Assembly: GCA_002794465.1 (NCBI GenBank) | Contig: MTSL01000014.1 | Location: 1-32,000, forward strand | Reading direction: 5' to 3' | Source: Paramicrosporidium saccamoebae KSL3 | Lineage: Eukaryota; Fungi; Cryptomycota | Length of the DNA: 32,000 bases | In this document: piece after piece, positions 1,949-30,949 of the stretch | How the letters are laid out: every line of letters starts with the position of its first letter | Position numbering within the stretch: the first letter of the stretch is position 1 | Translations under genes and position numbers: made by a program | Notes under the pieces: model-generated | The model's input: the letters and a program-made list of their open reading frames with translations, nothing else | Database searches by the model: none | What the model was told of the DNA's origin: nothing

Positions 1949-2082
1949 TGTGACGTAGAGGATGGATTAGTTGGGTATTTGTGTGCTAGAGTGGATCGCT
2001 TTGCTGGGTATCCATACTATTCTAGGATTAGCAATGAACAAGCCCCCTTCCCGTCCATACTATTTATCCCCACCACGCGACA
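1949..2082 (-). mobile_element. Dispersed TG...CA element, copy A (134 bp)
   Basis: Reverse complement reads TGTCGCGTGGTGGGGATAAATAGTATGGAC...CAAATACCCAACTAATCCATCCTCTACGTCACA. Aligns to the copy at 29942..30142 with three deletions. Confidence 0.8.
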
Positions 2083-2249
2083 GCCTGTTACTGAAAGACC
2101 ACAAAATCAACTTTTCCGACCCGCCTCACAAATCCCATCCGACTTGTTTATTAGTACAATGCACAGCGTTCGCCGCTCTTCCCATTCCACACGCGCTACT
2201 AATTCAGGCAGTTTCCATCTCCGCCCTAATCCAAGACATTCTAACCCAG

Positions 2250-4139
2250 CTAACCAATCCTTGTGATTTCATCTAGCGGCTCTTGGTCCATTTGCTCCAC
2301 CTGCAGCTGCCACTCTTTTCTTCTTTGATAATCTTTCACTCTTTCCACCATCGCTAAGGATATATTATAGCTCCCCAAGCTCTGAAGACGCTCCCAATCT
2401 GGAAGCAGCTCGGGCCTTTTTGCAAAAATCCACAGCACCAACTCTGTCGCCTTCGTAGAGTAAAAGGATGTCCTAATCCCGTCCAGGAGAGAGTTTTTAG
2501 ACGGGAATGCGTCTGGATTCTTTTCGATAATCCAATCTAATGCTTTAATGTTCCCAGTACGTACTGCTGCGCCAGCCATCTCCAAGTTAGCGACGTCCAT
2601 ACCCAGAGCTCCGGAAAGCCATTCGTGAATGTCTATACCAGTCTTTTTGGAAGCACAAAGCTCCAACAAGTCTTGAGCAGTAAAGCGTCCTGGATCATGA
2701 AAATACACACTCTGTATATATTCAACTGGCTGGTTTTTTAGCTCGTCCACCGTGGGCATGTACCGCCCATCTTTAGTCTTGCCATAAAGATAGCTTAGAA
2801 GCGCTAAAAATTCTCTTCGCACCTCAATGTCATAGCTCCATCTGTATCGCCTAAAGCTAATAGCTTCCCTGCTAGGCAGTAGTTGTGGTTGCTCCTCTAC
2901 GGCCCAAATAACAAAAGACCATTCTTCACAGTCGATTGCATCATTGAAATCTCCCTCTGTAAAAATGATTTCATGTTTCGTCTTGTAAATTTTTCGGCCT
3001 GTCCAGAGAGCCACCCGGTACCGTTTCAGCGCTATAGCATGGCGATAGAGCAGCTCTAGTGGGACCAGCCTAGGTTTAATACCATATAATTCAACAATCA
3101 TGGCATAATGCCACATAGTTAGTTCACTCGCATTTTCCTCTTGATAGGCTTCAGGCGGAAACTCTTTGTTGTGACGATACAGAAACTTGAATATTTCAAC
3201 GTGTCCTTTGATCATGATGTTTGATATGCATACCTTACTCGGCTGTACTGTAGGGTCAGTAAAATAAGCCCACTGAAGAATCTCTAGGCATCCATGATTA
3301 ACAGCATAGTCCAAGCTCTCCTGGTCCAGTAAAAAATCCCTTTTCCGCTTGTATAGGACTTCAAGTAGTTCCCGTGAATCGTTATGCATGGCCCATTCCA
3401 CTACCCATGAGACATTCACAATGTCGCTGTTGACTGACAAAAGAAAATCAAGGGCATTAGGATCACGAATCTTCACATTGAGCGTTAAACCGTCAAATAT
3501 TGTGGAATCTTTTTCATGTAGTAGACGCAGAGTATTGGTGTGTCCCAATCTGGCCAATTCTTGCACATTGCGACCTTTAGGATTAACATTCATCCCCAAA
3601 TGTTGAAGAATCTTGGCTGCGTCGAACAATTCCAAAGCCTCCTGAGATGGTACAAAAACTGTATCCAAGCCGAGTAGCAAAGGATTTGCTCTTGCATATT
3701 TGAAGAATTCAACGTTATCGGCTCTGAATATTTGTTCCCAACAAACTTTCCAGTCAAACACCATGCCATCCCACAGCTCCTCGTGAAACAAAGGCAATCC
3801 AAACAGCCGTGCGTAAATCCAGTGATAGTCTCTCGGACCCCCCGAGCCGAGAAGAAACATTCTTTGAGCACAGCAGAGAATGTATTTGTAGTCCATGCGA
3901 AGCGCCTTTTCTACAAGGCACTTGGGATCCATCTCGAAAACCTGGTTACCAAAGGCAATAGGACACGCATCGCGAATGGGCATCCCTTCCTCTTTAACGG
4001 CGTTTTCAAGTTCCTTGTCAAGTTCGCCCACTGATGATAGGTTTTCTTGACGGTCGCTCAGTTCAGTAAACTCTACGCCCTTGGAAGCACCTCCTCGGCC
4101 CAGAAAGAGTAAAAACGGAATGATCACAGAGCACAGCAT
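2250..4139 (-). CDS. Secreted ankyrin-like repeat protein, paralog 2 (most divergent)
   Basis: 629 aa with a hydrophobic N-terminus (MLCSVIIPFLLFLGRGGAS). The block FDWKVCWEQIFRADNVEFF matches paralog 1 FEWDNYWPMIFKADNAEFY. Repeats such as AVNHGCLEILQWA and AVRTGNIKALDWI. Confidence 0.75.
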   Translation of the reverse strand: MLCSVIIPFLLFLGRGGASKGVEFTELSDRQENLSSVGELDKELENAVKEEGMPIRDACPIAFGNQVFEMDPKCLVEKALRMDYKYILCCAQRMFLLGSGGPRDYHWIYARLFGLPLFHEELWDGMVFDWKVCWEQIFRADNVEFFKYARANPLLLGLDTVFVPSQEALELFDAAKILQHLGMNVNPKGRNVQELARLGHTNTLRLLHEKDSTIFDGLTLNVKIRDPNALDFLLSVNSDIVNVSWVVEWAMHNDSRELLEVLYKRKRDFLLDQESLDYAVNHGCLEILQWAYFTDPTVQPSKVCISNIMIKGHVEIFKFLYRHNKEFPPEAYQEENASELTMWHYAMIVELYGIKPRLVPLELLYRHAIALKRYRVALWTGRKIYKTKHEIIFTEGDFNDAIDCEEWSFVIWAVEEQPQLLPSREAISFRRYRWSYDIEVRREFLALLSYLYGKTKDGRYMPTVDELKNQPVEYIQSVYFHDPGRFTAQDLLELCASKKTGIDIHEWLSGALGMDVANLEMAGAAVRTGNIKALDWIIEKNPDAFPSKNSLLDGIRTSFYSTKATELVLWIFAKRPELLPDWERLQSLGSYNISLAMVERVKDYQRRKEWQLQVEQMDQEPLDEITRIG

Positions 4140-4181
4140 ACAACGTGTCCAGGAAGCGGTTTCGATGCACCCCTGGCGTGA

Positions 4182-4217
4182 TCAGCCACCCCGGTACAGT
4201 TGCGCCGGGGTGGCTGA
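4182..4217. repeat. Perfect 13-bp inverted repeat with 10-nt loop
   Basis: TCAGCCACCCCGG-tacagttgcg-CCGGGGTGGCTGA, 42 bp upstream of the paralog 2 ATG. Confidence 0.9.
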
Positions 4218-4611
4218 CTACTTGAATTATCGTTGTGCAAAGTAGTAAAATAAGTAGTAAAATGATTGACTAGTTCACTGTTGAATTAATAGTGAACGAG
4301 CTCTCTTCCTGTCTGAAAAAGTACTCGGTGACACTTGGAGATGACTTTTTCGAGGCACTGTCAGTCTGAATGAAGAGTGAGTGAGGGGCGAGTGAGACAG
4401 AACACGTCTATTGAAAGACAGCCGTTACAGGCAGCACAAGTTGACTGTTCTGGCACCAAAATTGGCAAATGACTTGAATTATTTACCCTACTACAACTAT
4501 TAACAGTCTGGAACAATAATCAAGATTTTTAAGACAAACGCTCTGGTTAGTCATGGATTGTCTGATGTGGTTTAGACCTTTTTAGGCTGTAACTGTTAAA
4601 CAGCATCCACT

Positions 4612-4767
4612 TGTCACGTAGTGGGGATAATACCGCGGCCCGGTTTAGGCGAGAAGAGAACCTGTTCACTGCTAATTCTAGAATAGTATGGCTACACATC
4701 TCACTGTCCTCAAATACCCGACTAATCAATCCTCTGCCTCCGCCTCTGTCTTTGCCTCTACGTCACA
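4612..4767 (+). mobile_element. Dispersed TG...CA element, copy C (156 bp)
   Basis: TGTCACGTAGTGGGGATAA...CCTCAAATACCCGACTAATCAATCCTCTG...CCTCTACGTCACA. CACT flanks both ends (4608-4611 and 4768-4771). Confidence 0.8.
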
Positions 4768-5014
4768 CACTTATTATTGGCGAGTCCCATCCAGATCCGG
4801 ATAGCGGTCCCACAGGCCAGTTTGGTTATATTAAGAATGGCTACCTATATGCTACATACTCTAATAAAAGTGCGTTCACCCATCAAAAATAGCCACAAGC
4901 TTTAATAAACGATTTTGTCAGTCCGTGACTGGCCGTTGCGGAACGGGTAAAGACAGCAATTACCACCCTTACCACGTAATACCTGGTTGGCTCTTTAAAG
5001 GAGTTTTATTAGTG

Positions 5015-7021
5015 TCACTGGTCGTTTTTGTCTGCCACCCATTTTTGGAGATCCTTATCCTTCCCTAGATTGGTTGGAAGTTTCTTGCACGTCTTCCACA
5101 TCCAGTTCAAGTAATTATACTTCCACACGTTCCCTTTAGCTACCAAGTTGGCAACCTCGTCAGTACACACCAACGATGCATCGATTACATGGATCGCTTT
5201 TAGGAATTCAAATTTACTAAAGTCTGCAGCCCTCGTCGCGACATTTGCAGTTATGGGCAGTCCTTGCTCAAGAAGCCACCATAAAATTTCCACGTGGCCT
5301 AATTCGGCCGCCCGTAGCATCATACCCGGTTCAGTCTTAGCAGCGCCATTTGTCTTTGAGACGATCCATTTGAGAGTTGCTAGATACGCGTCCTCGGACA
5401 CACCGTCAAACCACGGATAGATTACACCCAAACGGGGCAGCACGTCATTACAAAGGGTTTTCGATATCCATTCCGCAAAGTCCTGATTGTTGTGCACAAA
5501 GGCATAGACAAGACACTTTGATGCATTAACGCGAGTCCCGTCATGTCTAGGCGCTATTCTGGAACTGTCAATCTTGGCAACCCAGCGCAGAACAGTCTCA
5601 TCGCCCATCCTGCATGCTTCTTCCACAGCATCGCTGTTCGGAAGAGTCCCTGACTGGTCAAATGCCCATTGGAGGATTTCTTTGTGGCCATTCTTTGCTG
5701 CAGAATTTGCTACACTTTGCCACGGGAAATCGAGTACCGATTCAGCAAGCGCAGTTTGCAGTCCTTGCAACTCACCTTTGGTTGCCAACAAACAGAGCTT
5801 TACCTTGCGCGGCGACAAGACACTAACAGTGTCCATAAGATATTTGATCATTTCCTGAGAGTGTGGGCCATGGTAAGATCCCTTTTCCACCACCTTGTCC
5901 CAATCAATTCTCTTTCCAAACTCCTCAAATGTCCATTTGACAGTTCCTAAATTCCCTGCCGTTATGGCGCTAGAGACTGTATATTCTGATGGAATCTGCA
6001 TCTTTTCCTTAGTTTGCAGAAGCTTCAAGACATCAATACTGCCCTTTGTGATAGCTATATCGCAAAGAGTGCTATAGATGTGTTTGATCTTGAGAACTCC
6101 TTCAAGTATTTCTTGCACCAGCGGTAAACAGTTATGCGCGACGAGCCATCCTACACAGTCGGAGTGAACTGTTGGTATGCCCTCACGGAACTTCAGACAC
6201 ATGTCTGGGATTTGAGTGTAGCCGATATGGGAGAGATATTGGAGCGCCTTGGCAGTTTTCACATCCTGAGGAGCCACGTGGCTGGTGTCGAGGCGCAGGT
6301 CTCGATTAGAAGCAATGACTTGGTCAATGATACGCGGTGGTCCGTGCTCAGTCATCAAATCCACATCCTCTGCAATCTTTTTTGCCATTTCCGAGTTTTC
6401 CAAATTTAAAAACTTGAAAATGTTGACTGCATCATGCATGATGATACTTTTAGACAGTTCAACTCTGGAAATTTCCTTTAAATACGGCGCATCGCGGACA
6501 TGTTCAAGCTTGAAAATTTCACTTGCATCATAAATGACAATGTTCTTAAGCATGTCAGTTTCGGGAATGCCCCTAAAATACGAAGTTTCGCGGATTTGCT
6601 CAAAGAGCTTAGCATCGTCGGGCTTGATTATCAATTCCCAAAAGCTATCAAATTTGGGTGGCGCCAAATTATGGGGCTCCAAATGATGGGGCTCCAAATG
6701 ATGGGGCGCCAAATGATGGGGCTCCAAATGATGGGGCGCCAAATGATGGGGTGCCAGATTGAGACCGGCTCCTTTCTGCGCTACTATTTTTTCATCTGCG
6801 AGAGCAAGATCACCAGGTATCAATGCAGACTCCATACAAATAAAGCCGTCTTCAGGCAACTCGGCACTAATTGAGCCTCTACAAATTTTCGAGCTTCCAG
6901 CAGTTGAGCTGTTATCAGCCTCCGCTTCTAGCCTGGAAGAGTCGACGGTTCGATCCACATTTAACGAAAACAGAGTTACTGTGAACCAGAACATGCGGTG
7001 GGTAACATTAAAGAGTCTCAT
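5015..7021 (-). CDS. Ankyrin-like repeat protein, paralog 3, with a His-Pro pentapeptide repeat
   Basis: 668 aa, collinear with paralog 1 to the C-terminus (LQKWVADK vs LQNWVADK). Repeats AAKNGHKEILQWA and AAELGHVEILWWL. Moderately hydrophobic N-terminus; exact start uncertain. Confidence 0.8.
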   Translation of the reverse strand: MRLFNVTHRMFWFTVTLFSLNVDRTVDSSRLEAEADNSSTAGSSKICRGSISAELPEDGFICMESALIPGDLALADEKIVAQKGAGLNLAPHHLAPHHLEPHHLAPHHLEPHHLEPHNLAPPKFDSFWELIIKPDDAKLFEQIRETSYFRGIPETDMLKNIVIYDASEIFKLEHVRDAPYLKEISRVELSKSIIMHDAVNIFKFLNLENSEMAKKIAEDVDLMTEHGPPRIIDQVIASNRDLRLDTSHVAPQDVKTAKALQYLSHIGYTQIPDMCLKFREGIPTVHSDCVGWLVAHNCLPLVQEILEGVLKIKHIYSTLCDIAITKGSIDVLKLLQTKEKMQIPSEYTVSSAITAGNLGTVKWTFEEFGKRIDWDKVVEKGSYHGPHSQEMIKYLMDTVSVLSPRKVKLCLLATKGELQGLQTALAESVLDFPWQSVANSAAKNGHKEILQWAFDQSGTLPNSDAVEEACRMGDETVLRWVAKIDSSRIAPRHDGTRVNASKCLVYAFVHNNQDFAEWISKTLCNDVLPRLGVIYPWFDGVSEDAYLATLKWIVSKTNGAAKTEPGMMLRAAELGHVEILWWLLEQGLPITANVATRAADFSKFEFLKAIHVIDASLVCTDEVANLVAKGNVWKYNYLNWMWKTCKKLPTNLGKDKDLQKWVADKNDQ
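6660..6762 (-). repeat. 15-bp coding tandem repeat, about 6.5 units
   Basis: + strand units GG(C/T)(G/T)CCAAATGATGG encode (A/E)PHHL on the minus strand. Confidence 0.95.
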
Positions 7022-7336
7022 CGTGCAGCGTGCCTACCTTAGTTAGTCATTTATTCGGTTGGTAAATTATATGAATGAGCCAGCCAATTACGATTGGAAG
7101 ATGCGATCAATTATTTTTATAGGGACGGCGCTTTAAATTTATCGTTGAGCGGTCTTAGCCCCGAGACAGTGGGCGGATTTGTTAACCAAACTCTGTTTAG
7201 CAGACCCTTTATTGACTCGCTCGCACGAAAACGGCCAGATCGACCCATCACTTTGCTTATTGCACGCCCTTGACTCTCCTTCCCATCAAATCTGCAATGT
7301 TTACATTTTATTTGGCCTCGGCCACAATTTGGAGAC

Positions 7337-9229
7337 CTAAACGGCAAGACGGTCGTACAGCCCATTAGTTTTCAACCATTCAATCACGCCATCTCGGTTG
7401 TGGATTCTCGCCTAAACAAAATTAAACAAGTAAACACAGTACAATATCCAAAATGTTCCGTCCGTCCTCATCAGAAAAGTCTAGGGAAACTCCAATGTCG
7501 AATAGAAGGGTAAGCACTCCAGCATCATTAATTCTTACAGCATGCATGACAGCATGTTTAATGCTCGAGGGCAATGTCGACAGTTTTGCTCCAGTCTCCA
7601 GTAAAGACGCTATGATTCTGTGTGCGTTCTCGGACCTTTTCCGGATCCATCTTTCAATTGCCTCCACCAACTATACCCAATGATCATACTAAAAATCGAT
7701 TATACAGGAGTCTTTCCAAGAGAATCGCGCAAGTGGACATTGGCACCGTGCTGCAATAGCCATTTAACCGCCTGATAACTCTCACAAGACACGGCAACAT
7801 GAAGTGGAGTCCGAAGATCGTAATCGACGCAATTTACGATATTTTCGTGATAAGCTAGCGACTCTAAAGCGGCAACATTGTCTTTAGAGGCTGCGACGTG
7901 AATGATGAGGGGACGCAATAGCTCGTCCACAGCACCGCGATGACCAGGCGCTGCCGAGATCAAAGCGGAATTGAACACTATCCCAAGCCAATCCACCGAA
8001 GACGACAAAAACTTGTCCTTGTGCATGAGAGGGATGGTAAGCTCTCCCCTCAGACTCTCTGACACAAGCCGCCGAACCGTCTCTAGATCAAGTTCAGGCT
8101 GCCCCAACAAATAACTTAGCTTGACCAGTGCGCACTCTACCGTCATGTCTCGTCCCGAAATGACGCCAGCCTCAGCCAGCGCATGGCCTGTCGAATAGAT
8201 TTCCGACACAGTGCCCCGTTGGCATTGGGTGATATTGACAATCACCACACCGCGATCAACAGCCTCTCTTATTACTTGAATGAGCTCAGGGCGATTGTCG
8301 GGGGCATTCCCAGTCCCAAATGTCTCCAGAATAACGCCCCTCGTCGGTGCAGCCAAAAATGCCCTTAGCGAATTTGCCGTGATTCCAGGGAATATCCTCA
8401 AACATCCGACATTGGGATCCATCTGTCCCTTGACTTTGAATGGCGATAGATCTGTTGGACGCAAAACCTCTGCCCATTCAATGTCAATATCAACGCCCAC
8501 TATACCCAGCGGTTTTAGATTCGGACTTGAAAAGGCTTCAAATCCAACCGCATTCGACTTGGACACTCGATTGCCTCGATACAGCCGATGGCCAAAGAAG
8601 AGGCACACTTCGGGTATCATAAAATGGCCAGCGATTGTGAGGGCACCCAGGAGATTGTCTCTAGCGTCATTGCGAACCTCTGAAAATGGAATTTGGGAGC
8701 CTGTGAAAATCACCGTCTTGCCCAGGTGCTGTAGGAGAAACGATAATGCAGAGGCGGTATAGGCCATGGTATCGGTGCCATGCAAGATCACAAATGCGTC
8801 ATAGGCCTGGTAATGGGCTTCAATATCCTTGGCAATCTTGATCCAATCGTCCATCACCATATTGCAAGAGTCCTTGAGCGGGTCATACTCCAGCACCTGA
8901 TAAACAATCCTCTTTCCGTACATGGAGGGCTTCAAGGCCAACATTTGACCAATATTGTTATCCATTGAGGTAATGTCGAATTGCGGGTCATTCTCTGCGA
9001 GATGGGATAGACTGTTTACAAACTTGCTGTCGTTAAAGCTACTGTCATTGGCAAGATAATTAGACAAGTATCCTGCCACTGGAAAATATCCATGCACCGG
9101 GTCATTCCTCATCCCAATGGTTCCTCCACAGTACAAAACAAGTACTTTGGAAACGGCATTGCCGGTCATATTTTGTACCGGTGCTGATGCCTTGGCATAC
9201 TCGACCACAGTGTTAGTGTGCCAATTCAT
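7337..9229 (-). CDS. ASPG: Type I L-asparaginase/lysophospholipase with C-terminal ankyrin repeats (3 exons)
   Basis: Motifs LYCGGTIGM, HGTDTM, TGSQIP and ETFGTGN, with ankyrin DYDLRTPLHVA. GT-AG introns 7671..7705 (35 nt) and 7412..7442 (31 nt) restore GKTP|LVEAI and NILDI|ARIHN, ending at the TAG at 7337. First in-frame ATG is 9229; the track start at 9364 is TTG. Confidence 0.9.
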
Positions 9230-9362
9230 AGTCCCTGGCGCCCACTTTGCATAGTCGGTAAAGTGGCGTGGAACTAGGTGCAAGGTAAGATTAGGTGTAA
9301 TGTGGGGTTTGGAATAATGGTGATTGAGAGACTCAAATGGAAGGGGATTTTGAATCACTCGC

Positions 9363-9458
9363 AATCTCTCATGTTTTTAATCTCTAAATCTCTCATGTTT
9401 CTTAATCTCTCAACATCCCAAATCTCTCATGTTTCTTACTCTCTCAACATCCCAAATC
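9363..9458. repeat. Pyrimidine-rich tandem repeat (24+34+34 bp units) in a divergent promoter
   Basis: AATCTCTCATGTTT(C)TTA(A/C)TCTCT occurs three times; two units continue CAACATCCCA. Confidence 0.9.
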
Positions 9459-9501
9459 AACTCGACTCAAAAACCCCCCACGCACCCCAATTCAAACCGG
9501 G

Positions 9502-19945: not shown

Positions 19946-20142
19946 CAGGATCCGCTTATGATTGGTAATCCTGATAGTTATCTACAGCCCAATCCAGATG
20001 TATTGGGAATGTCTGGCCTATAGGCAGGATTTACCATTTCTCAATTATGATTGGTCCGCGGGTGTCACAAGTTGGCCCTATTGGAAAACGGCTTCCCCCA
20101 CAACCGTTTTGAAGGAACTGACGCACAGAACCGGACGGCGAT

Positions 20143-21296
20143 ATGAGTACTGAAGAGCAAGGTGGAAATGCGGATTTTTTAGCTGCAGCTACTGCGGAAA
20201 TCCAAGAAGTGGCATTGCAATCCCCCTTGGCTAATAGAGAGGCTGAGCTCCGGCGGTCTATGCTGGAAATACACAACGATGCATTACTGACTCCAAAGGA
20301 AAAGGCCCAGCGAATGCAAGTAAGCACTTGTTTGTGTCATACTGATGATAGGATTTAATGATTGGCAAGTTCAACTTGAAACGGCCAGTATCAAGAAATT
20401 CCGAATTGTCTCGTTCAGGCTCCATACGAAGCCCTGCACCCGAAGACCAAAGTGCAATCGAGTCGCTCATTATTTCAGACGAAGATCGGGTTCCATCATT
20501 TCATACTAATGGACAGGATGCAGATGGCCAGAAAAACCTTGGCTGTCGCCATTACCGGTGTAATTGCAAATTCCGTTCGGAATGCTGCGAGGCCTGGTAT
20601 ACATGTCGACTTTGTCACGATGAGAAGGAAGACCATAGTATAGACCGGTACAGCATTAGATATATGCTGTGCATGTTTTGTCAGACTCCCCAGCTGGCTG
20701 CAAAGTCGTGCAGATCGTGCAATCGATCAATGGCGCACTATTTCTGTGGCATTTGTAATCTCTGGGACGATGATCCAGAGAAACCCATTTTCCACTGTGA
20801 AAAATGCAAGATTTGTCGAAAAGGGGTCCGAGAGGACTTTGTACACTGTGACCGATGCACTGGATGCATCAGCGCCTCCCATTACCCAAATCACAAATGT
20901 TTGGATGGGTCCCTGCAGAGCAGCTGTCCGATTTGTGGGGAGAATCTGTTCACCACAACTACAGCGGTTCTCTTTATGCCCTGCGGCCATGCGATCCATT
21001 TTCTGTGCCATCACGAGCACACAAGGAATTCTTATCAGTGTCCGATATGTCTAAAGTCCTTGAGCAACATGTCACATTTCTTTTCCAGAATAGACGAAAT
21101 GATGGAATCCCAACAAATGCCCGAGGAATACACAAGAGTCAAGTCGCAGATTCTGTGCAACGACTGTGAGAAGAAGAGTGTTGCTAAATTCCATTTCGTC
21201 TACCATCGATGCGAGCATTGCTCCTCATATAATACAAAACTACTGCGGACATTTAGTAGTGACGACGTTTCCGCAGAATCAGGTGAGCAACATTAA
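20143..21296 (+). CDS. RCHY1: CHY zinc finger / RING E3 ligase (Pirh2-like), 2 exons
   Basis: GCRHYRCNCK...CRLCHDEKEDH (CHY), RING CPICGE...CGHAIH...CPIC and terminal CNDC...CEHCSSYNT. Intron 20320..20351 (GTAAGC...ATAG, 32 nt). Confidence 0.93.
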
Positions 21297-21342
21297 ATAA
21301 ACATTTCCAGAACTATATAAGGATGAGTTGCATGAATAATGC

Positions 21343-23914
21343 ATGACGACAGAATGGTCGACGGATGATGATACCGCGCGAGATGAGGAATCTTGCATCA
21401 TGTCCTTGGTGTTCAAGCGAGGAGTGTTGGGTGCAGCAATACTTGAACGTGATGAGCAAGGAACCATGTTCATGATGAGGTGTGTACCCGAAACGGTCGG
21501 ATTTACGACATCAGAACAGTGTACACCCCGATACTCTCCCTTAATGCGCAATAGTGGTTTTTGAAAAAGTACCTGACATCATTATTGTTCCTGGCCGCGG
21601 CGAATACGAGTTTATTCAAAAAGTCGAGAGCTTGGTCCAGGAACTTCAGTCTCAAAAGGCAAGGACCGAGTTGGTGCGAGGAATGGCCAGTGAATTTAAG
21701 CCTGCAATGTTGCAAATTACCTTGCAGATGCCGAAAGAGGCCATCGAGGCAAATTCCCTTTCGGTATACTACTTTGCGGTACTCGAGTAATGCATAGATC
21801 TCTGCAGCTTCATCAATCATTTCGTTTCTCAAGCGCAGCACTCCAAGTGCACCACTCCCATGCTCCGCAGAATGGTTCAGCCGATCTCAGGGCGTCGCGC
21901 TAGACCAGGCATCTCTTCTTGCCTTGCAAATTATAAATGATGACTCACATCCAAACATGCATCTGTCAAATCGAGAGGGAGGGCTATCCTTGCTGAGTAG
22001 CCTTATATGTGAGCCTAATTTATAGCGCTAATGAATCAGTGCAAGTCTTCGCCAGGAAGAACCCTGATTAAACATTGGATTACAAACCCTTTGATCGATA
22101 AGAATGAAATCAACAAGAGGCTCGAGGCAGTGGATTGCTTCATGAAAATGCAACAGGAATCAAACATGATTACGTCAATTCAAAAATGCTTCCGTGGGCT
22201 ACCACGGATCAGAGTATTAATAGCGCAACGCTATAAATTATCCATAGGGTGCGCTCTGTGGAATCCGAGGCCAGCCCAAATTGACCAACTTTGAAGATCT
22301 TTGCAAGGCAAGTGTAGTTATAACCTACTTGACTTGATAGTTCCTGAGCGGAATGACAGAAGTGTGTCAAATACTTTCGGCAGGCAACCACGACAACTTG
22401 TCAGAGGTGAATGTTGGTCTGATAACTGAGCTAAACTCTACAATTTCCGGAATCGTACAGCGAGACCTTTATTAACAGCATAGATTGATTTTTCACAGTC
22501 GCGAATACAAGGAAGAATAGTGATTAGGTCCAAGGTGAATCCTGATCTGGATCAAATACGAAAACAATATACGGGGCTGCCTGAATTTTTAGCCAACATT
22601 GTCAATCAGATCGCAGCCCGCATTACGAGCACAAAAGTCAGTACCATCAACGTCGTCTATTTCCCTCAGCTTGGATTTCTAGTTACCATTCCGCTTACCA
22701 AGGAGACTGAGCTTCAGTCAATTGGAGATTGCGGTTTTGAACTGCAATTTAAAACGGAAAAGGTGGCCTACTTTAAGGATACGGCCACTAGAGGTCTTGA
22801 TTCCGAGATTGGTGACATTTTTGCCGACATTGTTGATTTGGAAATTGAAATTGTTCGTGTTCTTGCTGATCAGATTGTGCCACATTGCGCCACGCTATCC
22901 AAGTATGAGAGGCTGCTGGCTGAGGTAGATTGTCTGCAGTCCTTTGCCTCCTTTGCCCTGGAGAACAATTTAGTGAGGCCAGAAATTGTCGAGGACGAGA
23001 CGTTGGAGATTGTAAATGGGAGGCACCTGCTGCAAGAGCGAGTCTGCCATGGCGTGGTAGGCAACGACTGCATCTTTGGAGAGAAAAGACTTTTAATAAT
23101 CACGGGACCAAACAGTTCTGGAAAGAGCATTTATATGAAACAGGTAGATCTGATCTACAGTGTGTATTAAGCTGTAGGTGGCTTTGATTGTGCTCATGGC
23201 CCAAATGGGAAGCTTTGTCCCGGCCAAGCAGGCACGAATTGGAATAGTCGATAGGATTTACACTCGCATACAAACACGCGAGACGATCAGTTCGGTATAT
23301 TTTTCCTGTCGAGCAAACTTTAGGGGTCGAGCGCGTTTCAAACCGACTTGCTCCAGATTAAACGAGCGATTGAAGGATCAACAGAAAGATCCTTGATTCT
23401 AATCGATGAATTTGGAAAGGGAACCATCCCCAATGACGGAATCGCAATATTCACTGGCTTGATGAGGTACCTTATCACAAAGGAAAAGTGTCCGCGCACT
23501 ATTGCCATTACACATTTTCATGAAATCTATCAACAGGGACTACTCTCTCAAGATCTTCCCATCAGATGGAGCACCATGGACCTGCTAGAAGGCGAAGGCG
23601 ATAGTGTTGTCTTTTTGTACAAGGTAATTTCGGGCAAGACTCAGTCCAGCTTGGGAATTCGCTGCGCCCGTGCTGCAGGCATAAAACAGAGCACTCTAAG
23701 TAGGGCCGAGATCCTGACTGGATTGTATGCGGCCAAAGTGCCAAGCATTGACATTCGCTACGCCAGAGTTGATCCAATATTGGAAAAGTGTGCACTTGAT
23801 TTGATCAAATCAGTACAAGACGCTAATGAATCTGTTGAGGATGTTCAGAATATCGCCAAGATGCTTGTCCACAAACCACGCAATGTAGTAGACTTTAAAG
23901 TTGTGAGCTTGTAA
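21343..23914 (+). CDS. MSH5: Meiotic MutS homolog 5 (9 exons, about 771 aa)
   Basis: [15 protein letters not shown]|[15 protein letters not shown] and the MSH5-type LQI...SHP...GLSL block. Introns 21521-21554, 21764-21797, 21997-22025, 22214-22247, 22308-22340, 22455-22483, 23144-23177 and 23295-23323 give one continuous frame of 772 codons. Confidence 0.88.
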
Positions 23915-24055
23915 GGGTGGGTTGATCGAAAGACTTTTATTCATAATGTCACTGCAACTTGTTCGTGCAAACTAGGCCGTTGGATTGACAATAAACAAGT
24001 TACCTCATCTTTCCAAATCCCTCCCTTATCTCATAATTGATTTTGTTAAATTGTG

Positions 24056-24071
24056 GGCCTTTAAAAAGGCC
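24056..24071 (-). promoter_or_regulatory. Histone mRNA 3' stem-loop
   Basis: Minus strand CAAAT-GGCCTT-TTTA-AAGGCC-CACAA: a 6-bp stem with a 4-nt U-rich loop, 27 nt after the H2A stop codon. Confidence 0.85.
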
Positions 24072-24098
24072 ATTTGTATGATTACAAGGCGAACAGGT

Positions 24099-24494
24099 TT
24101 AGTATTCCTGAGACTGAGAGTCTTCCTTGGATCCCTTCTTGGGGAGGAGGACCTGGTGGATGTTGGGCAAGACACCACCGCTGGCAATGGTAACGTCACG
24201 GAGAAGCTTGTTCAACTCTTCGTCGTTGCGGATAGCCAACTGGAGGTGACGGGGAGAAATGGTCTTCTTCTTGTTGTCAGCAGCAGCGTTTCCGGCCAAC
24301 TCGAGAATTTCAGCAGTCAAGTACTCCAAGACGGCAGCGAGGTAGACGGGGGCACCGGAACCAATACGTTGAGCATAGTTGCCCTTGCGGAGGAAACGAT
24401 GGATACGACCAACGGGGAACTGGAGTCCAGCCTTATCAGAGCGGGACGTGGCCTTGCTTGAGTTATCTTTCTTGCCTCCTTTTCCGGCAGCCAT
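24099..24494 (-). CDS. H2A: Histone H2A with C-terminal SQEY (H2A.X-type) motif
   Basis: [25 protein letters not shown]...[18 protein letters not shown]...GGVLPNIH. Intronless, ends SQSQEY. Confidence 0.99.
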
Positions 24495-24532
24495 TTGCTA
24501 TACTACTCAGTTGAGTGTAGCCCCCTCCTCGA

Positions 24533-24678
24533 CCCCCCGCCCTTTATACCCGGCCCAATTGGCGGGTAAACTCGCCCGCTCCCCTGGTCCCGCCAATTTT
24601 TGGATTAGCCAGGGATTACAGCATCCAGCCCGCCAAACAGCCAAAGTATGGGGGATGTGTGCAGGGTGGGTTGATTGG
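24533..24678 (-). promoter_or_regulatory. H2A proximal promoter: GC box, TATA box and CCAAT boxes
   Basis: Minus-strand GGGCGGGGGG (24533-24542) and TATAAA (24543-24548). CCAAT/ATTGG at 24555, 24558, 24593 and 24674. Confidence 0.55.
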
Positions 24679-24796
24679 CGTGTGAGAGGGATGTAGAGCG
24701 GATTAACTAATGTGTTGAATAGTAGGTTCATCATTAGACTTTAACGAGTCCCCTTCAATTCAACAGTGATTTACGGGTTCTATAAAAATATTTTAT

Positions 24797-26930
24797 TTAG
24801 AACAAGAGATCAAATTTTGGATGCAAAAGGACCGTAGGATCATTCTTTAGGGACTTTATGGGCTTTCCAGCAACAACCGTCTCAATCTCTTCACGAGTCA
24901 GCGTCTCATAATCCAAAAGTGCGGCAGCTAATTTATCGAGTTGGGATCGATGGAGGGAAATGACTGCCTTGGCTCTGCTTTGAGACTCATCGAGGAGCCG
25001 CCTGATTTCCGAGTCGATCAGTTCGCGGGTCTGAGGGCTTAGTGTGTCCCATTCGTCATCTCCAATGACTACCGTTCCCACCTTGTCGCTCATTCCAAAT
25101 TGTGTCACCATGGCTCTTGCAATAGCGTTTGCCTGTGAAAAGTCATTGCTGGCGCCAGTGGTAATGTTGTCATCGCCAAATACCATCAATTCGGCCACTC
25201 TTCCTCCCATCGCAACATCCATCCTGGCCAGGAGCTGGGCTTTGCTCACGGACAACTCGTCCTTTTCTGGTAGCTGCGTCACCATTCCTAGAGCTCCTCC
25301 ACGCGGCATAATTGTAGCCTTGTGGATCGGATGTGCGTGCTTGGAGAACATTGCCACAATTGCATGGCCGCCCTCGTGATAGGCAGTGACGCGTCTCTCC
25401 TCCTCAGTGATGATTGTGGACCTTCTCTCAACGCCCATGAGCATCTCGTCCTTTGCTTGCTCTAAATGATGCATTGTCACCTCCAGCCCATTCTCCACCG
25501 AGGCGACAATCTTGGCCTGATTTACCATTTTGTACAATTCCGCACCGGAAAAGCCCGGAGTGGCACGAGCCATTACAGCAGTATCCACATCCAGCGACTG
25601 ATTCACGTCCTTCAAATACATTTCCAGAATCTGCTTCCTCCCCCGAACGTCAGGTAGTGGCACGTGGACGTGACTATCAAATCGCCCAGGCCGCAGCAAA
25701 GCTTTGTCGAGACTTTCTGGCAGATTGGTGGCGGCAATCACAATGACTCCAGTGTTCTCGGCAAACCCGTCCATCTCTGTAAGCAGTTGGTTCAGGGACA
25801 TTCTGGAGTGCTGCGGATCGCGGGGATTCCTCTTACTTCCGATTGCATCAATTTCGTCAATGAAAATGATTGCCGGTGCCTGCTCCTTGGCGCTGTCAAA
25901 CATTTGGCGGATCCTCATGCTGCCGACGCCAACAAACACTTCATCAAACTGTGAACCGGAGGCGTAGATAAAGGGGACATTGGCTTCTCCAGCGACAGCC
26001 TTTGCCAGCAAAGTCTTGCCTGTCCCAGGCGGTCCCACGAGCAAAACTCCCTTTGGCATCTTTGCCCCAAGCTTGTTAAACTTTGTTGGGTTCTTCAGAA
26101 ATTCAACAATCTCCTCCAGTTCCTTCTTTGCCTCGTCGCATCCTTGGACATCGTCAAAGCTGTACGTCTTCTCAACTGTATCTTTTTTGAAAAATTTGTG
26201 CACTTTTGTCGAGATTCCGCCTAGCCGTTGATCGTTCATTGTGAACACTGAGTAAACAATGGTTCCTACAATGAGAACATTGAGGACGGTCCAGACTCTC
26301 TTCCATCCGCTCGATGAAGTTGTGGTCTGAACAAAAATGGGCCGGTCCTTGGTGCCAAAATTCAAAAACGGAATCGAAGACGGACCATTTACGGCCTCTC
26401 CCTTGCTTCCAGAAGCAATAAACAGTCGTGCTGCACGATCAAGCTGATTAGTCTCATACAGAGCCGCCAGGTAGAGTGAAGCACATTCTTCGTCACGGGC
26501 ATATCTCATGTTTTCGAATCTCTGTATCACCACCTCTGGCTCGCTATCCACAAGCTCCCTATATAGTGCCGCCTGTCGTACTGAGCTGGCTGGTTCGGCT
26601 TCGGCAAGTTCTTCCAGTCGAACAATATCTCTACCGAACCGAAAGAAGAAACGTCGCTGAAGAAGGGGCTGGACGGGAGGCTGTCTTGGTCTTGGCTGAG
26701 TATGTAATGTGCGTTTAATGAGGGAAAACGGTGACCGCATCTCCTGTGCAGTGCAGAGCCTTTCCTTTTGTGTAATAGCTGCTTTGGCAATAGTCTCGGA
26801 CCCAAAAATACTACACATCGACCTCTAAATAGTCAGCATCCAAAGTACCCAGTACCGGTAATACGGCAGAGCTCGTTTGCAGAGTTACGGAACATGGCCG
26901 CTTGGTTGAACCTTGCGGCAATACACTCAT
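24797..26930 (-). CDS. YME1: Mitochondrial i-AAA protease (FtsH family)
   Basis: [24 protein letters not shown], second region of homology LLRPGRFD and HEGGH zinc motif. A probable extra 5' exon joins via intron 26825..26855 (31 nt), with candidate ATGs at 26930 or 27026. Confidence 0.93.
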
Positions 26931-27266
26931 AAATTTGCGCAACGAAGACTCGAGACCATGTGTGCCTGAAGAGTTGTAGCTCGCTAAAACTGAGGAATAA
27001 GAGTTGTTCCAACAACCCGACAGCATCGGACTCCTGATTGGCTCCACCGTGGACGCGATTTATGGACTATTGTATTGGATCTAAAGATAGACATTGGGAT
27101 CAAAGATGGGCATTAAAGGTAGATATCACAATCCAATGCATACCATCTGACTAATTAAATAGAGATATCAAAATGAATCAACAGCGCTCCACATCAGAGT
27201 AGTCAACAGGTGTTAAGATTATATCGGCCAATTATATCCCGAAATTCCACGCCGGTCTGCTTGGGA

Positions 27267-28225
27267 ATGTCGGACGGCACTATCAACTTTTTGAGTGGCA
27301 CTGCCGGTGGTATATCCCAGGTGCTGGTGGGCCATCCATTCGACACCCTCAAGGTGTGACCATTGGCCATAATGGACTCTTGCTCGTAGGTGCGGCTGCA
27401 GACGCAGAATGGCCAATACCGAAACGCCGTGGATTGCTTTGTTAAGACTTTGAGGGCCGAAGGCGCAGCAGGCTTGTATAAAGGTGTCGGATCCCCAATC
27501 CTTGGAATCGGCTTCTGGTATTCTTCAAGTCCGTTTTTGAACACTGTAGCAATGCTATCCTATTTTCTGCCAATGGGTTCTTTCGAGGCCTGCTTGCCGT
27601 AGAGGGTCAAGCACTTTCCCTTGGTAGTCAGTCTCCTCAATGCGTCATCTTATAGGTCAATTGACAATGGCAGGCTCCATGGCAGGTTCCGTGATGGCCT
27701 TTGCCAATTGTCCAATCGAGCTATTGAAAGTTCGGCTCCAAATCCAAGATCCATCGCGTCCACGAATCTACACAAGCATTTTTGACTGTGCACAAAAGTC
27801 ATACGCTGCCCACGGACTCAAAGGCCTCTATCGCGGATTTACAGCCACCGTGATGCGTGATATTCCAAGCTTTGCAGGCTACTTTGGTCTTTATGAAGGA
27901 ATGAAGATGATGCTAAAGTCCGAGGGCAAGGAGCTGGGTCATTTTGATCTTCTCCTGGCGGGTGGACTGGCAGGATTTGGTACAAGGATTGTTCTAATGT
28001 TCATTTATAGGCGCTTGGTTGCCATGCTACCCACAAGATGTTATCAAGTCCCGAATGCAATCTTCTGCACACTACCCTAACACATACGAATGCGCCGTCT
28101 CAATTTACCGCGACGGCGGTATACGCGCCTTTTTCCGCGGCTTTGGTCCAACAATGTTACGTGCCTTCCCTGCCAACGCGGCTACCTTGTATGTCTACGA
28201 ATTTGTTAGATCACAACTTCAATAA
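27267..28225 (+). CDS. Mitochondrial carrier (SLC25; YMC1/CRC1-like), 5 exons
   Basis: Three PxDxxKxR-type signatures (HPFDTLKVRLQ, CPIELLKVRLQ, YPQDVIKSRMQ). Introns 27354-27389, 27518-27549, 27624-27655 and 27980-28010 give 275 aa. Confidence 0.9.
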
Positions 28226-28293
28226 ACGCTGGCTACTACTGCGAAAAGATCCACGTGGTTTATTCTTTAAATAATTGCGCAATCCCATACAAT

Positions 28294-29921
28294 ATGCGCG
28301 CGCTGTTCAGTCGAGTTGGGCAACAAATTTCATCATCGGGAGTAAGAAGGACGAGAAACTTTTCATCAGCCTGTAAGCAACTCATCATTGATTGATCGGA
28401 ATAGTGGAAAATGACACTGTCAATAGAGAGGGAAGGGAGCCATCGTACATTGCATTGGACGTGTTGTCGTGACCATGTAGATTCTTTGAATCTGTCGAGC
28501 TCTACTATAACCGTGCAACAAAGCTGCTTGGTGACCGATTCTCCGCCGCCACGCTCGATCACATCCGGGCACCTGACACCAGTCTCAGCTTTACCTTCCC
28601 CATTGAGCGTGCTGATGGCAGCACTGAGATTATCACCGGCTACCGCGTTCATCACTCCAGGCATCGCACACCCACCAAAGGTGGGATTCGATTTTCCAAA
28701 AATGTCAATTTGGATGAAGTATCTGCGCTGGCAATGCTAATGACCTTTAAATGTGCAATCATCGAAGTTCCGTTTGGAGGTAGATGAAAAGTTGCAATTG
28801 ACTATTCTGTAGGAGCCAAGGGCGGAATTTCAATTGATCCCGCAGAGTGGGATCCTGTCAGACTCGAGCGGATCACCAGACGCTACACCTTGGAGCTGTG
28901 TCAAAAGAACTTTATCGGCCCAGCTATCGATGTACCCGCACCGGATATGGGGACTGGCCAGCGCGAAATGTCCTGGATTCAGGATACCTATCGACAGTTC
29001 TATCCGCACGAAGTAGACGGAATTGGCTGTGTCACTGGCAAGCCAGTCAACCAAGGCGGAGTTCGCGGTCGAACCGAAGCCACCGGCCTTGGAGTGTACT
29101 ACACAGTCCGCGAGTTTCTCAAGTTCCCCGAAATCCAGCGAAAAACGGGCATTAGTGGCATTAAAGGTGCTCGTATTGCCATTCAAGGCTTTGGTAATGT
29201 CGGCGCATGGGCAGCGCATTTTTTTTCCGAAAACGGAGCCAAAATTGTGGCCATTGGAGAACGTGATTCGTGTCTGTTCAACTCGGAGGGGCTCAACGTC
29301 AAGGCAGTTTCAGAGTACTTTTTGCAAAAGGGAACGCTATCAGGCTTTGAATCGTTGGGTACGGCGCATAATGCTGATCCCAAAGCAGTGCTGGAGGCGG
29401 AATGCGACATTTTGATTCCAGCGGCAATGGAACATCAGATCACTATGGAAAATGCTCATTTGATCCGTGCCAAGATGGTTGCCGAGGCCGCCAACGGACC
29501 AACCACTCCCTCTGCGGACCGGAAACTACATGAAGACGGCATTATAGTCCTCCCTGACATGTTGACTAATGCTGGAGGCGTCTGTGTCTCGTACTTTGAA
29601 TGGCTTAAGAACCTCAGTCATGTCCGTTTTGGACGGCTCAGCAAACGATGGGAAGAATCCTCAAAAGGCCACATGCTTGATCTCATCGAAGCCTCGGTGG
29701 GCACTAAATTCGAGGAGCAAGTGCGGCGAATCGTCGGGGAAGGAGCCAGTGAACAGCAAATTGTATATAGCGGACTGGAGGATACCATGATCAATGCGTG
29801 TGCAGAAGTACGCGGCGTGGCCATGGAAAAGAATGTTGATATACGCACAGCCGCCATGTATGCAGCGATAGTCAAGGTGGCAGATTGTACAGATACCTCT
29901 GGAATGATTTTTATGAAATAA
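28294..29921 (+). CDS. GDH: Mitochondrial NAD(P)+ glutamate dehydrogenase, GLUD1-type, 4 exons
   Basis: Arg/Ser-rich presequence MRALFSRVGQQISSSGVRRTRNFSS. Motifs PTKGGIRF, VPFGG|AKGG, DVPAPDMGTG, GRTEATG and IQGFGNVG. Introns 28373-28404, 28445-28480 and 28780-28812 give 508 aa. Confidence 0.95.
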
Positions 29922-29941
29922 ATTTTGAATGTCAGTAAGGG

Positions 29942-30142
29942 TGTCGCGTAGTGGGGATAAATAGTATGGACTGTCGGGCGGGAAGGGGGGGGTTTGTTCA
30001 CTATTAATCTTAGAATAGCATGGATACACATCTCACTGTCCTCAAATGCCCAGCAAAGCAATCCACTCTAGCACACAAATACGTCTTTTCCAAACTAAGG
30101 AACTATCCTCAAATACCCAACTAATCAGTCCTCTATGTCGCA
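29942..30142 (+). mobile_element. Dispersed TG...CA element, copy E (201 bp, carries all three internal modules)
   Basis: TGTCGCGTAGTGGGGATAAATAGTATGGAC...CCTCAAATACCCAACTAATCAGTCCTCTATGTCGCA, starting 20 bp after the GDH stop. Confidence 0.85.
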
Positions 30143-30401
30143 AGAGGGCCCCGATTGCTGATGGAATGTCAGTAGGAGAGAACTCAGATTTTTATAAAGC
30201 GCTCCTTAAGTAATAATAAAAGAATCCCATCCACTTGTAAAACTACATAGTACTGCCCCTATTACACAGCTCCCACTATTTGACAAATTGCATTAGGCTT
30301 AAAGCTAGAAATCTTTGTGCCAGGGCTAAGCTCCCCTCAAGGCCGCAATCTACTCCGTCCCGCCTGCCAGTCTCGTCGCACAACCAGTGACCGCTCATTC
30401 C

Positions 30402-30712
30402 ATGGCTAGTCAAGCAGCTGACTTTCCCTTTGCAACCCATTTAACTTGTCAAAGCTACACACCTTGCAGCAACGGGAACCCCAAAATAGCCGCCTTCAAG
30501 GCCCGTCACAATGGGGCGTTTTACGAATAGCACTGTATCCACATAACCAGCACTTCTCGAAATCTCCTCTGAATGAACTCCAGAGGTTTGAGGATAGTAG
30601 CTACATTTGCTCTGGGGCTTTCCAAGCGTCCACAGTCATACGACGACTACAGACACTTGAAAAACTCCAGCGCAACTCTAATGTCGTGCGGTGGTTGATA
30701 TTGCGTGATTAA
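30402..30712 (+). pseudogene. Possible mitochondrial ribosomal protein bS6 (MRP17-like) with a -1 frameshift at GGGG 30513-30516
   Basis: Joining the ATG-30402 frame to the 30446..30712 frame gives ...HNG-GVLR...Y...FQAS...VVRWLILRD, about 104 aa, with bS6-like motif spacing. Judged from recalled family pattern only. Confidence 0.35.
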
Positions 30713-30949
30713 TTGGGTTCCATGGACTTTGTGAAGCAAGGAAACGCGAGCTTATCTATTATAGTCTCGACGAGTTAGTAATAGTATTCATAAGCGCCTC
30801 GAGCTAGGGCGACGTTCCTTTCATTTTCGGATGGAAGAATTCTCTCTATAAGTATGTACGTAAAAGTTCCTACGTCATAATATAACCCACCCAATGCCCA
30901 ACACCTACTACCCAATGTATCGTATACACCTTGAATTCATGGTTGTTTA

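Follow-up and report, generated by a model that had tools for sequence, protein, structure and literature searches.

A compact contig with five copies of a short repeat

The stretch of DNA analysed here (the window, 32,000 nucleotides) consisted of forward-strand bases 1-32000 of contig MTSL01000014.1 from Paramicrosporidium saccamoebae KSL3, a parasite of amoebae (GCA_002794465.1). It contained compact eukaryotic DNA in which open reading frames (ORFs) were long and mostly uninterrupted, including genes for an M1 aminopeptidase, CwfJ, UPF1, a Yme1/FtsH protease, glutamate dehydrogenase (GDH) and several proteins with ankyrin repeats, in one case fused to an asparaginase domain. Between these genes were five copies of a short repeat, referred to here as the TGT element, that belonged to a genome-wide family with defined ends and 4-bp target duplications. 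Gene calls were ORF heuristics.

The five copies had been noted in a first-pass annotation of the window, and their coordinates and strands were reproduced by an nhmmer profile made from copies across the sample described below (the five window copies included), which returned exactly five matches in the window with E-values that ranged from 5e-57 to 3e-17. Copy A (1949..2082, minus strand, 134 bp) was a short form without a target duplication, located between two convergent ankyrin-repeat ORFs and adjoining a fragment (1907-1948) of a second dispersed repeat family of the P. saccamoebae genome, designated family 2. Copy C (4612..4767, plus strand, 156 bp) was inside a family-2 element on the same strand, the left and right parts of which were at 4537..4611 and 4768-4968, and was bordered by a CACT duplication at 4608..4611 and 4768-4771. 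Copy D (12460..12620, minus strand, 161 bp), for which no duplication remained, was between the M1 aminopeptidase and CwfJ genes. Copy F (19724..19945, plus strand, 222 bp) had its first bases mutated to TTT, was flanked by CAGC/CAGG and was nested in another plus-strand family-2 element (left end 19704-19723, right part 19946..20131). Copy E (29942..30142, plus strand, 201 bp) was flanked by AGGG/AGAG and followed the GDH stop codon. Profile borders were identical to those first drawn for four of the copies and were 19724-19947 (plus strand) for copy F. A repeat finder also recovered the common right-end block and interior likenesses among all five copies. The earlier description of common left and right ends, of 4-bp flanks at C, E and F but not at A and D, and of an intergenic position was borne out, all copies being between long ORFs, and the starts of E, F and a possible sixth copy, G, were 20, 56 and 15 bp, respectively, after stop codons.

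Candidate G (14127..14271, plus strand) was itself missed by the profile, and nothing else in the genome matched it. Its likeness to the ends of the TGT element was confined to about its first 16 and last 17 bases. Comparison of its head with copies of a third subfamily gave a z score of 3.5 against one copy and 0.9 against another, and the likeness to an orthologous counterpart in a related genome was not significant (z 1.2). The candidate, a chance resemblance if not a very old sister-subfamily copy, was not counted as a member.

A direct repeat of approximately 14 nt, GAATGTCAGTARG, was noted at 29923-29941 and 30164-30178, where it flanked copy E together with 21 further bases.

Size, structure and age of the family

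The assembly searched for the TGT element comprised 7.19 Mb in 222 contigs binned from a metagenome (PMC5701793). The genome-wide search for the right end that had been proposed with the first description gave 260 matches to a 25-mer with no more than three mismatches, compared with none for the control, while a degenerate 16-mer of the left end gave 464 matches with no more than two mismatches, compared with 19 for the reversed control. Some of the left-end matches were internal duplicates, and the number of copies was estimated at about 430, i.e., about one per 16 kb or roughly 1% of the assembly. The density of one copy per 6 kb reported earlier therefore held for the window but not for the genome as a whole. 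Approximately 45 copies, from about 150 kb of genome, were examined at the sequence level, the 30 main loci in this sample having been picked by resemblance to copy E.

The elements were non-coding and ranged from 105 to 335 bp, most of them from 155 to 205 bp, with ends of the form TGTYR...ACA (left end TGTYRCGTAG, right end CTACGTCACA). The imperfect inverted repeat seen earlier at these ends was 10 nt long with 8 of the 10 positions matching, and past 10 nt the likeness was no better than that of shuffled sequences. Three parts were apparent in the 166-nt consensus: a head, then a G-run and body, and then a tail. The head, TGTCGCGTAGTGGGG, was followed by one of two short variants, and the tail consisted of diverged modules of 33-35 bp that each started with CAAATAC, the last of which carried the terminal CTACGTCACA. 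Copies differed chiefly in the modules that were present, absent or repeated. Thus, the end-bearing tail module was present one to three times per copy, and the 105-bp form was without approximately 60 bp between two ATAGTATG repeats. The two interior subfamilies recognised in the window were, on this wider view, part of a mosaic of modules that varied in number, with more than two subfamilies.

At least 11 copies were two-headed, i.e., had a first unit that was truncated and, joined to it at GATGCACA/TGTCGCG, a short unit that was complete (found at sampled loci L039-L044, on contigs 41, 79, 212, 169 and 188). In these copies the 4-bp duplication was at the outer and not the inner head (CGTT/CGTT, CTAT/CTAT and ACAA/ACAG), which indicates that the two-headed composite moved as a unit. 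The duplication of the 105-bp deleted form matched at three of four positions. Abutted right and left ends, as at the junction of a circle or dimer, were noted in one case only, where an 8-bp spacer separated what were two neighbouring copies.

Median pairwise identity among copies was 83%, rising to 90.5% for comparisons with the nearest sampled neighbour and to 97% for the best pair. Judged by these identities, and by the fraction of target duplications that are still perfect (27%), the family is middle-aged and decaying, and the window copies, which were 78-93% identical to their nearest neighbours, are among its older members. Copies of the element also interrupt the published assembly, several contigs of which started within a copy (C39:77-101, C76:87-111, C131:84-108, C150:92-116 and C108:89-104).

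Target duplications and empty sites

Insertion of the element was evident from the sequences that flanked it. For the 33 copies with both ends defined, a 4-bp target duplication was perfect in 9 and matched at three or more positions in 19, compared with frequencies of 0.3% and 5%, respectively, for shifted-flank controls (P about 1e-15). The duplications, which included CACT, AAAG, CGCT, AGTG, CCTT, ATTC, CTTT, CGTT and CTAT, were exactly 4 bp in length with a single exception of 5 bp, and a search of the sampled copies for duplications of 8-30 bp gave none. Conservation changed abruptly at both ends, mismatch to the consensus dropping from 0.62 in the flank to 0.035 from the first base of the element. 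A preferred target was also apparent, with T two bases ahead of the duplication and A two bases beyond it, each at 14 of 19 sites, giving the weakly palindromic pattern A-T-N-[4 bp]-N-A-T. A weak palindrome of this kind is expected of an enzyme complex with two-fold symmetry that joins the two ends of an element across a 4-bp stagger.

Empty sites were of two kinds. Among paralogous sites, family-2 copies read CATCCRCTTAT unbroken at about 110 places, while elsewhere the same site was split by a TGT element with CACT or CGCT duplicated; family-2 copies without an insertion read CATCCACTTAT at the insertion point of copy C. Orthologous empty sites, which the first-pass annotation had recommended looking for, were found for copies D and E in syntenic uncultured relatives. 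Thus, copy D was absent from the M1-CwfJ spacer of a metagenomic relative with the same gene order (M1 peptidase-CwfJ-UPF1; CwfJ 77% identical), and both flanks of the insertion aligned. Similarly, copy E was absent after the GDH gene of two syntenic relatives (GDH 92% and 72% identical), in which the spacer measured 290 and 162 bp as opposed to 1028 bp, E included, in P. saccamoebae. Neither the TGT element nor family 2 had a match in 28 kb of DNA from these relatives.

Other features of these spacers were noted as well. The part of the GDH spacer beyond copy E (30143-30949, approximately 800 bp) was free of ORFs and by itself far exceeded the corresponding spacers of the two relatives. Just after the M1 aminopeptidase stop codon, a block at about 12380-12440 that contained AATAAA was conserved with the relative, the rest of that spacer not being conserved; this block is probably the 3' end signal of the M1 aminopeptidase gene.

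Association with family 2

Family 2 comprised at least 120 or so copies genome-wide of a repeat of about 150 bp with inverted ends of approximately 15 nt that started with TAAAGGCCCTGTT. Inside the repeat was a CTATAAAGA box, and close to each of its ends were motifs like AATAAA; the copies are probably flanked by TA. Sixteen of 40 profile hits for the TGT element (approximately 37 distinct copies) touched family 2, although family 2 made up only about 3% of the sampled DNA. Many of these insertions into family 2 were independent, since the junctions were spread over many family-2 positions. One position was used repeatedly. At this hot site, CATCCRCT^TAT, about 21 copies were inserted genome-wide, all in one orientation, and the junction expected for the opposite orientation was essentially absent from the genome. 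In the window, copies C (junction at 4604-4623) and A were at the hot site, and copy F was 8 bp upstream of it.

Clustering at the hot site could reflect either multiplication of a composite by the machinery of family 2 or oriented, site-specific integration. Several sublineages were represented among the nested copies, which included pairs of CACT/CACT as well as CGCT/CGCT. Neither composite amplification nor oriented integration explains the copies at the hot site cleanly.

Position relative to genes and the question of a host function

A role for the element at the 3' ends of host genes, which the first-pass annotation had offered as an alternative to mobility, was considered in two forms, a cis-regulatory or 3'-end module under conservation and a gene for a small structured RNA, either of which the host would have multiplied and kept for a purpose such as transcript termination. 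The distribution of copies appears at first to favour this. Of 35 classified copies, 14 were between convergent, 18 between tandem and only 3 between divergent genes, compared with approximately 9, 17 and 9 for a 1:2:1 expectation (chi-square about 6.9), so that 32 of the 35 adjoined a gene 3' end. Moreover, E, F and G began within 15-56 bp of stop codons, and the first 20 nt were the best-conserved part of the element. When orientation relative to stop codons was tabulated, however, the association with 3' ends was upheld but no strand bias accompanied it, 24 copies being sense and 23 antisense to the adjoining gene end. The bias toward 3' ends fits selection against insertions into promoters, gene space making up 76% of the genome (PMC5701793).

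RNA structure was also considered. The predicted fold of the consensus was weak (-14 kcal/mol for approximately 180 nt), none of 28 predicted pairs showed a compensatory change, and the window contained neither an Rfam family at gathering thresholds nor a transfer RNA (tRNA)-like gene detectable with ARAGORN. A structured RNA or RNA family was rejected on these grounds.

The distribution of substitutions was informative with respect to when the ends of the element were constrained. Private substitutions were equally common over the first 20 nt, with 15 in 620 cells, and over the interior, with about 70 in 4340, whereas variants common to several copies avoided the ends. This combination indicates constraint on the ends during propagation and not after insertion, which is the pattern of a mobile element and not of a maintained cis-element. 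Together with the 4-bp duplications, which denote insertion as opposed to local origin, and the orthologous spacers of relatives that were without D and E, these results largely refute a host-multiplied module, which is now regarded as very unlikely.

Search for an autonomous partner

An autonomous element that might have mobilised the TGT element was sought, as had been suggested earlier, in the form of copies bracketing gag/pol or a DDE transposase, and none was found in the assembly. Neither an integrase domain (rve or rve_3) nor a transposase domain of the Harbinger type (DDE_Tnp_4) was present. The single reverse-transcriptase (RVT_1) locus of the assembly was a single-copy gene in three pieces at L033 4968-7888 (contig 124), the middle piece of which matched solved telomerase structures with an E-value of 1e-44. 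By this likeness the gene is that of telomerase, and its division into three pieces suggests introns or frameshifts. Exact-pattern scans for the element gave no match in metagenome contigs and, in viral sequences, one chance match of 17 nt with no further likeness. The assembly is incomplete, so that absence of a partner is not proven.

These searches bear on two classes of retroelement. In the first, the TGT element would be a tRNA-derived short interspersed element (SINE) copied by the reverse transcriptase of a long interspersed element, with the head (7 nt, TA, GTGG...CCAC) representing a decayed acceptor stem and D-arm with a polymerase III A box. Read by eye, the head does resemble a tRNA over the latter's first 25 nt, with GCGTAGTGG close to the A-box consensus. 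Nevertheless, no tRNA-like gene or Rfam match was obtained in the window, no reverse transcriptase other than that of telomerase was present in the assembly, and the element, with its duplication fixed at 4 bp and its ends defined as TGT and ACA, lacked a tail that was A-rich or made of simple repeats. A SINE was rejected because of the fixed duplication and the missing tail, and is the least probable of the explanations considered, with hardly any weight left to it.

The second class deserves more attention. Copies of the TGT element may be solo long terminal repeats (LTRs) of a small Ty3/Gypsy-type retrotransposon, left behind by LTR-LTR recombination, the gag-pol part of which has since been purged or is outside the binned assembly. 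Gypsy LTRs have as their signature 4-bp duplications and TGTYR...ACA ends that form a short, imperfect inverted repeat (PMC2836005), integrases show palindromic target preferences such as that noted above, and long repeats could be missing from an assembly that was binned from a metagenome (PMC5701793) and in which many contigs end within copies. Several results nevertheless tell against solo LTRs. Besides the lack of rve and rve_3 domains and of any reverse transcriptase but telomerase, no recurrent inner flank like a primer-binding site or polypurine tract was present in the sample of approximately 45 copies, and the consensus, read by eye, was without an AATAAA signal. An LTR must keep its promoter, R region and polyadenylation site, yet elements that ranged from 105 to 335 bp, among them deleted, two-headed and one- to three-tailed forms, carried duplications. 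A lone LTR cannot move alone. Every variant must then have been a working LTR of a live retrotransposon, which is hard to square with forms so varied. Solo LTRs are accordingly held to be possible, though on balance doubtful.

A miniature LTR element was also considered for a pair of copies in direct orientation, 371 bp apart, on contig 47; it was rejected because each copy had its own duplication, and the separate duplications likewise count against solo LTRs.

Comparison with known elements

Target duplications of LTR elements are 3-6 bp in length (PMC10045372). Solo LTRs of the Ty3/Gypsy group resemble the TGT element in having TGTNR...ACA ends, a short imperfect inverted repeat, a 4-bp duplication, a weakly palindromic target and a non-coding sequence of a few hundred bp or less. 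The P. saccamoebae family differs from them in the lack of paired copies around an internal region, in an assembly without gag, integrase or a non-telomerase reverse transcriptase, and in an extremely variable interior, the deleted, two-headed and multi-tailed forms all having been inserted.

Ginger elements, one of the possibilities named in the first-pass annotation, resemble the TGT element in their TGTNR ends and in duplications of 4 bp (or 5 bp), which in Ginger an integrase-like transposase generates. However, Ginger1 has inverted repeats of 40-270 bp and 4-bp duplications of CCGG or CCGT/ACGG, and Ginger2/TDD has inverted repeats of 50-180 bp and a 4-5 bp duplication at an RTATAY target (PMC2836005). 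With an inverted repeat of 10 nt, targets that were neither CCGG/CCGT nor RTATAY and no rve transposase in the assembly, assignment to Ginger was not supported.

Ends and duplication also agreed with those of IS481EU, which is known from parabasalids only (Trichomonas and relatives) and not from fungi or Rozellomycota. IS481EU has TGT...ACA (TNT..AYA) ends and inverted repeats mostly shorter than 50 bp; several of its families make 4-bp duplications, some show a discrete longer class of about 15 or 25 bp, and there are non-autonomous families of hundreds of copies (PMC10045372). The TGT element corresponds in its ends, an inverted repeat of less than 50 bp, a 4-bp duplication and hundreds of non-autonomous copies, but there was no IS481-type transposase in the assembly, duplications of about 15 or 25 bp were not seen and the host is not a parabasalid. 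MITEs (miniature inverted-repeat transposable elements) described as 'TGT' MITEs in Nosema microsporidia, to which no superfamily was assigned, have inverted repeats that start with TGT and duplications of 5-6 bp (PMC4405373). By description these are likewise short, non-autonomous elements with TGT-starting inverted repeats in hosts related to P. saccamoebae, with duplications longer than the 4 bp found here. MITEs in general match the TGT element in short length, non-coding sequence, high copy number, inverted ends and a fixed duplication, its inverted repeat being at the short end of their range; no autonomous transposon with the same ends was found in the assembly or in pattern scans of metagenomes.

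Interpretation of the family

The TGT family is probably, with appreciable doubt, one of short, non-coding, non-autonomous mobile elements that were mobilised in trans through their ends in the manner of MITEs. Such mobilisation is favoured over lone LTRs because deleted, two-headed and multi-tailed forms still carry duplications. Insertion of each copy would have been the work of a DDE enzyme, of the retroviral-integrase or IS3-IS481 type, that recognised both ends (TGTYRCGTAG on the left and CTACGTCACA on the right) and cut its target with a 4-bp stagger, preferably at A-T-N-[4 bp]-N-A-T. The ends alone would suffice for movement, given that the deleted, two-headed and one- to three-tail sublineages have all moved. 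Mobilisation in trans through the ends is how MITEs are moved. The gene for the enzyme would be outside the assembly, and the copies would now be relics under neutral decay, the survivors being mostly downstream of genes and within family 2, where insertion presumably does little harm. The family itself, its ends, the 4-bp duplication, the target preference, the empty sites and the lack of a partner in the assembly are shown by the results above, while we infer the type of enzyme, movement in trans and the lack of any host role.

Of the first-pass proposal of an integrase-family relic, then, a mobile relic with insertion of the integrase type is sustained by the duplications, ends, palindromic target, empty sites and hundreds of copies, and the Ginger affiliation is not. 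Several observations weigh against MITE-like mobilisation in turn. No autonomous element with these ends was found, and the type of enzyme follows only from the ends and the length of the duplication. An inverted repeat of only 10 nt, 8 of them matching, is no more typical of MITEs than of LTR ends, and TGTNR ends with 4-bp duplications are also a signature of Gypsy LTRs (PMC2836005). The family is not young, with 27% of duplications still perfect and a median identity of 83%, and an old retrotransposon could have lost its internal parts. Finally, the sample of approximately 45 copies was skewed toward those that resemble E. 

Less likely than either, though still above the host-module and SINE explanations, is that the copies belong to an undescribed integrase-related lineage of cut-and-paste or copy-out transposons of early-diverging fungi with an IS481EU-like signature. 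The transposase of such a lineage would be too divergent for rve models or would come from outside the binned assembly (e.g., from the amoeba host or a co-resident), and it would have integrated one way at a single family-2 position to give the 21 filled sites.

As a new family of a known kind, the TGT element points to otherwise ordinary biology. Its abundance is nonetheless of consequence for the genome in which it is found. Repeats were reported to make up only 0.53% of the P. saccamoebae genome and to be mostly simple (PMC5701793), as compared with roughly 1% for the TGT element alone, to which family 2 adds more. A substantial transposon record in a reduced parasite genome has thus so far gone unrecorded. 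Several breaks at contig ends of the assembly are due to copies of the element, which also occupy the longest gene spacers, can pass for regulatory motifs or small genes and constitute dated insertion markers for the comparison of Paramicrosporidium lineages.

Other repeats in the window

Repeats of other kinds were noted in the window. A short repeat of the CCAGACC/CCATACC type at about 14315-14345, just upstream of the UPF1 start, was present in much expanded form at the corresponding position of the relative (L036, approximately 2880-3010). Tandem arrays were present in two spacers, i.e., five to six 20-bp units at 17937-18056, downstream of UPF1, and 17-bp units at 9386-9453 in a divergent promoter spacer. 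Two further arrays were coding and consisted of 33-bp repeats at 19400-19630 in the ORF at 18168-19667 and of 15-bp repeats at 6645-6764 in the ankyrin ORF at 5015-7021.

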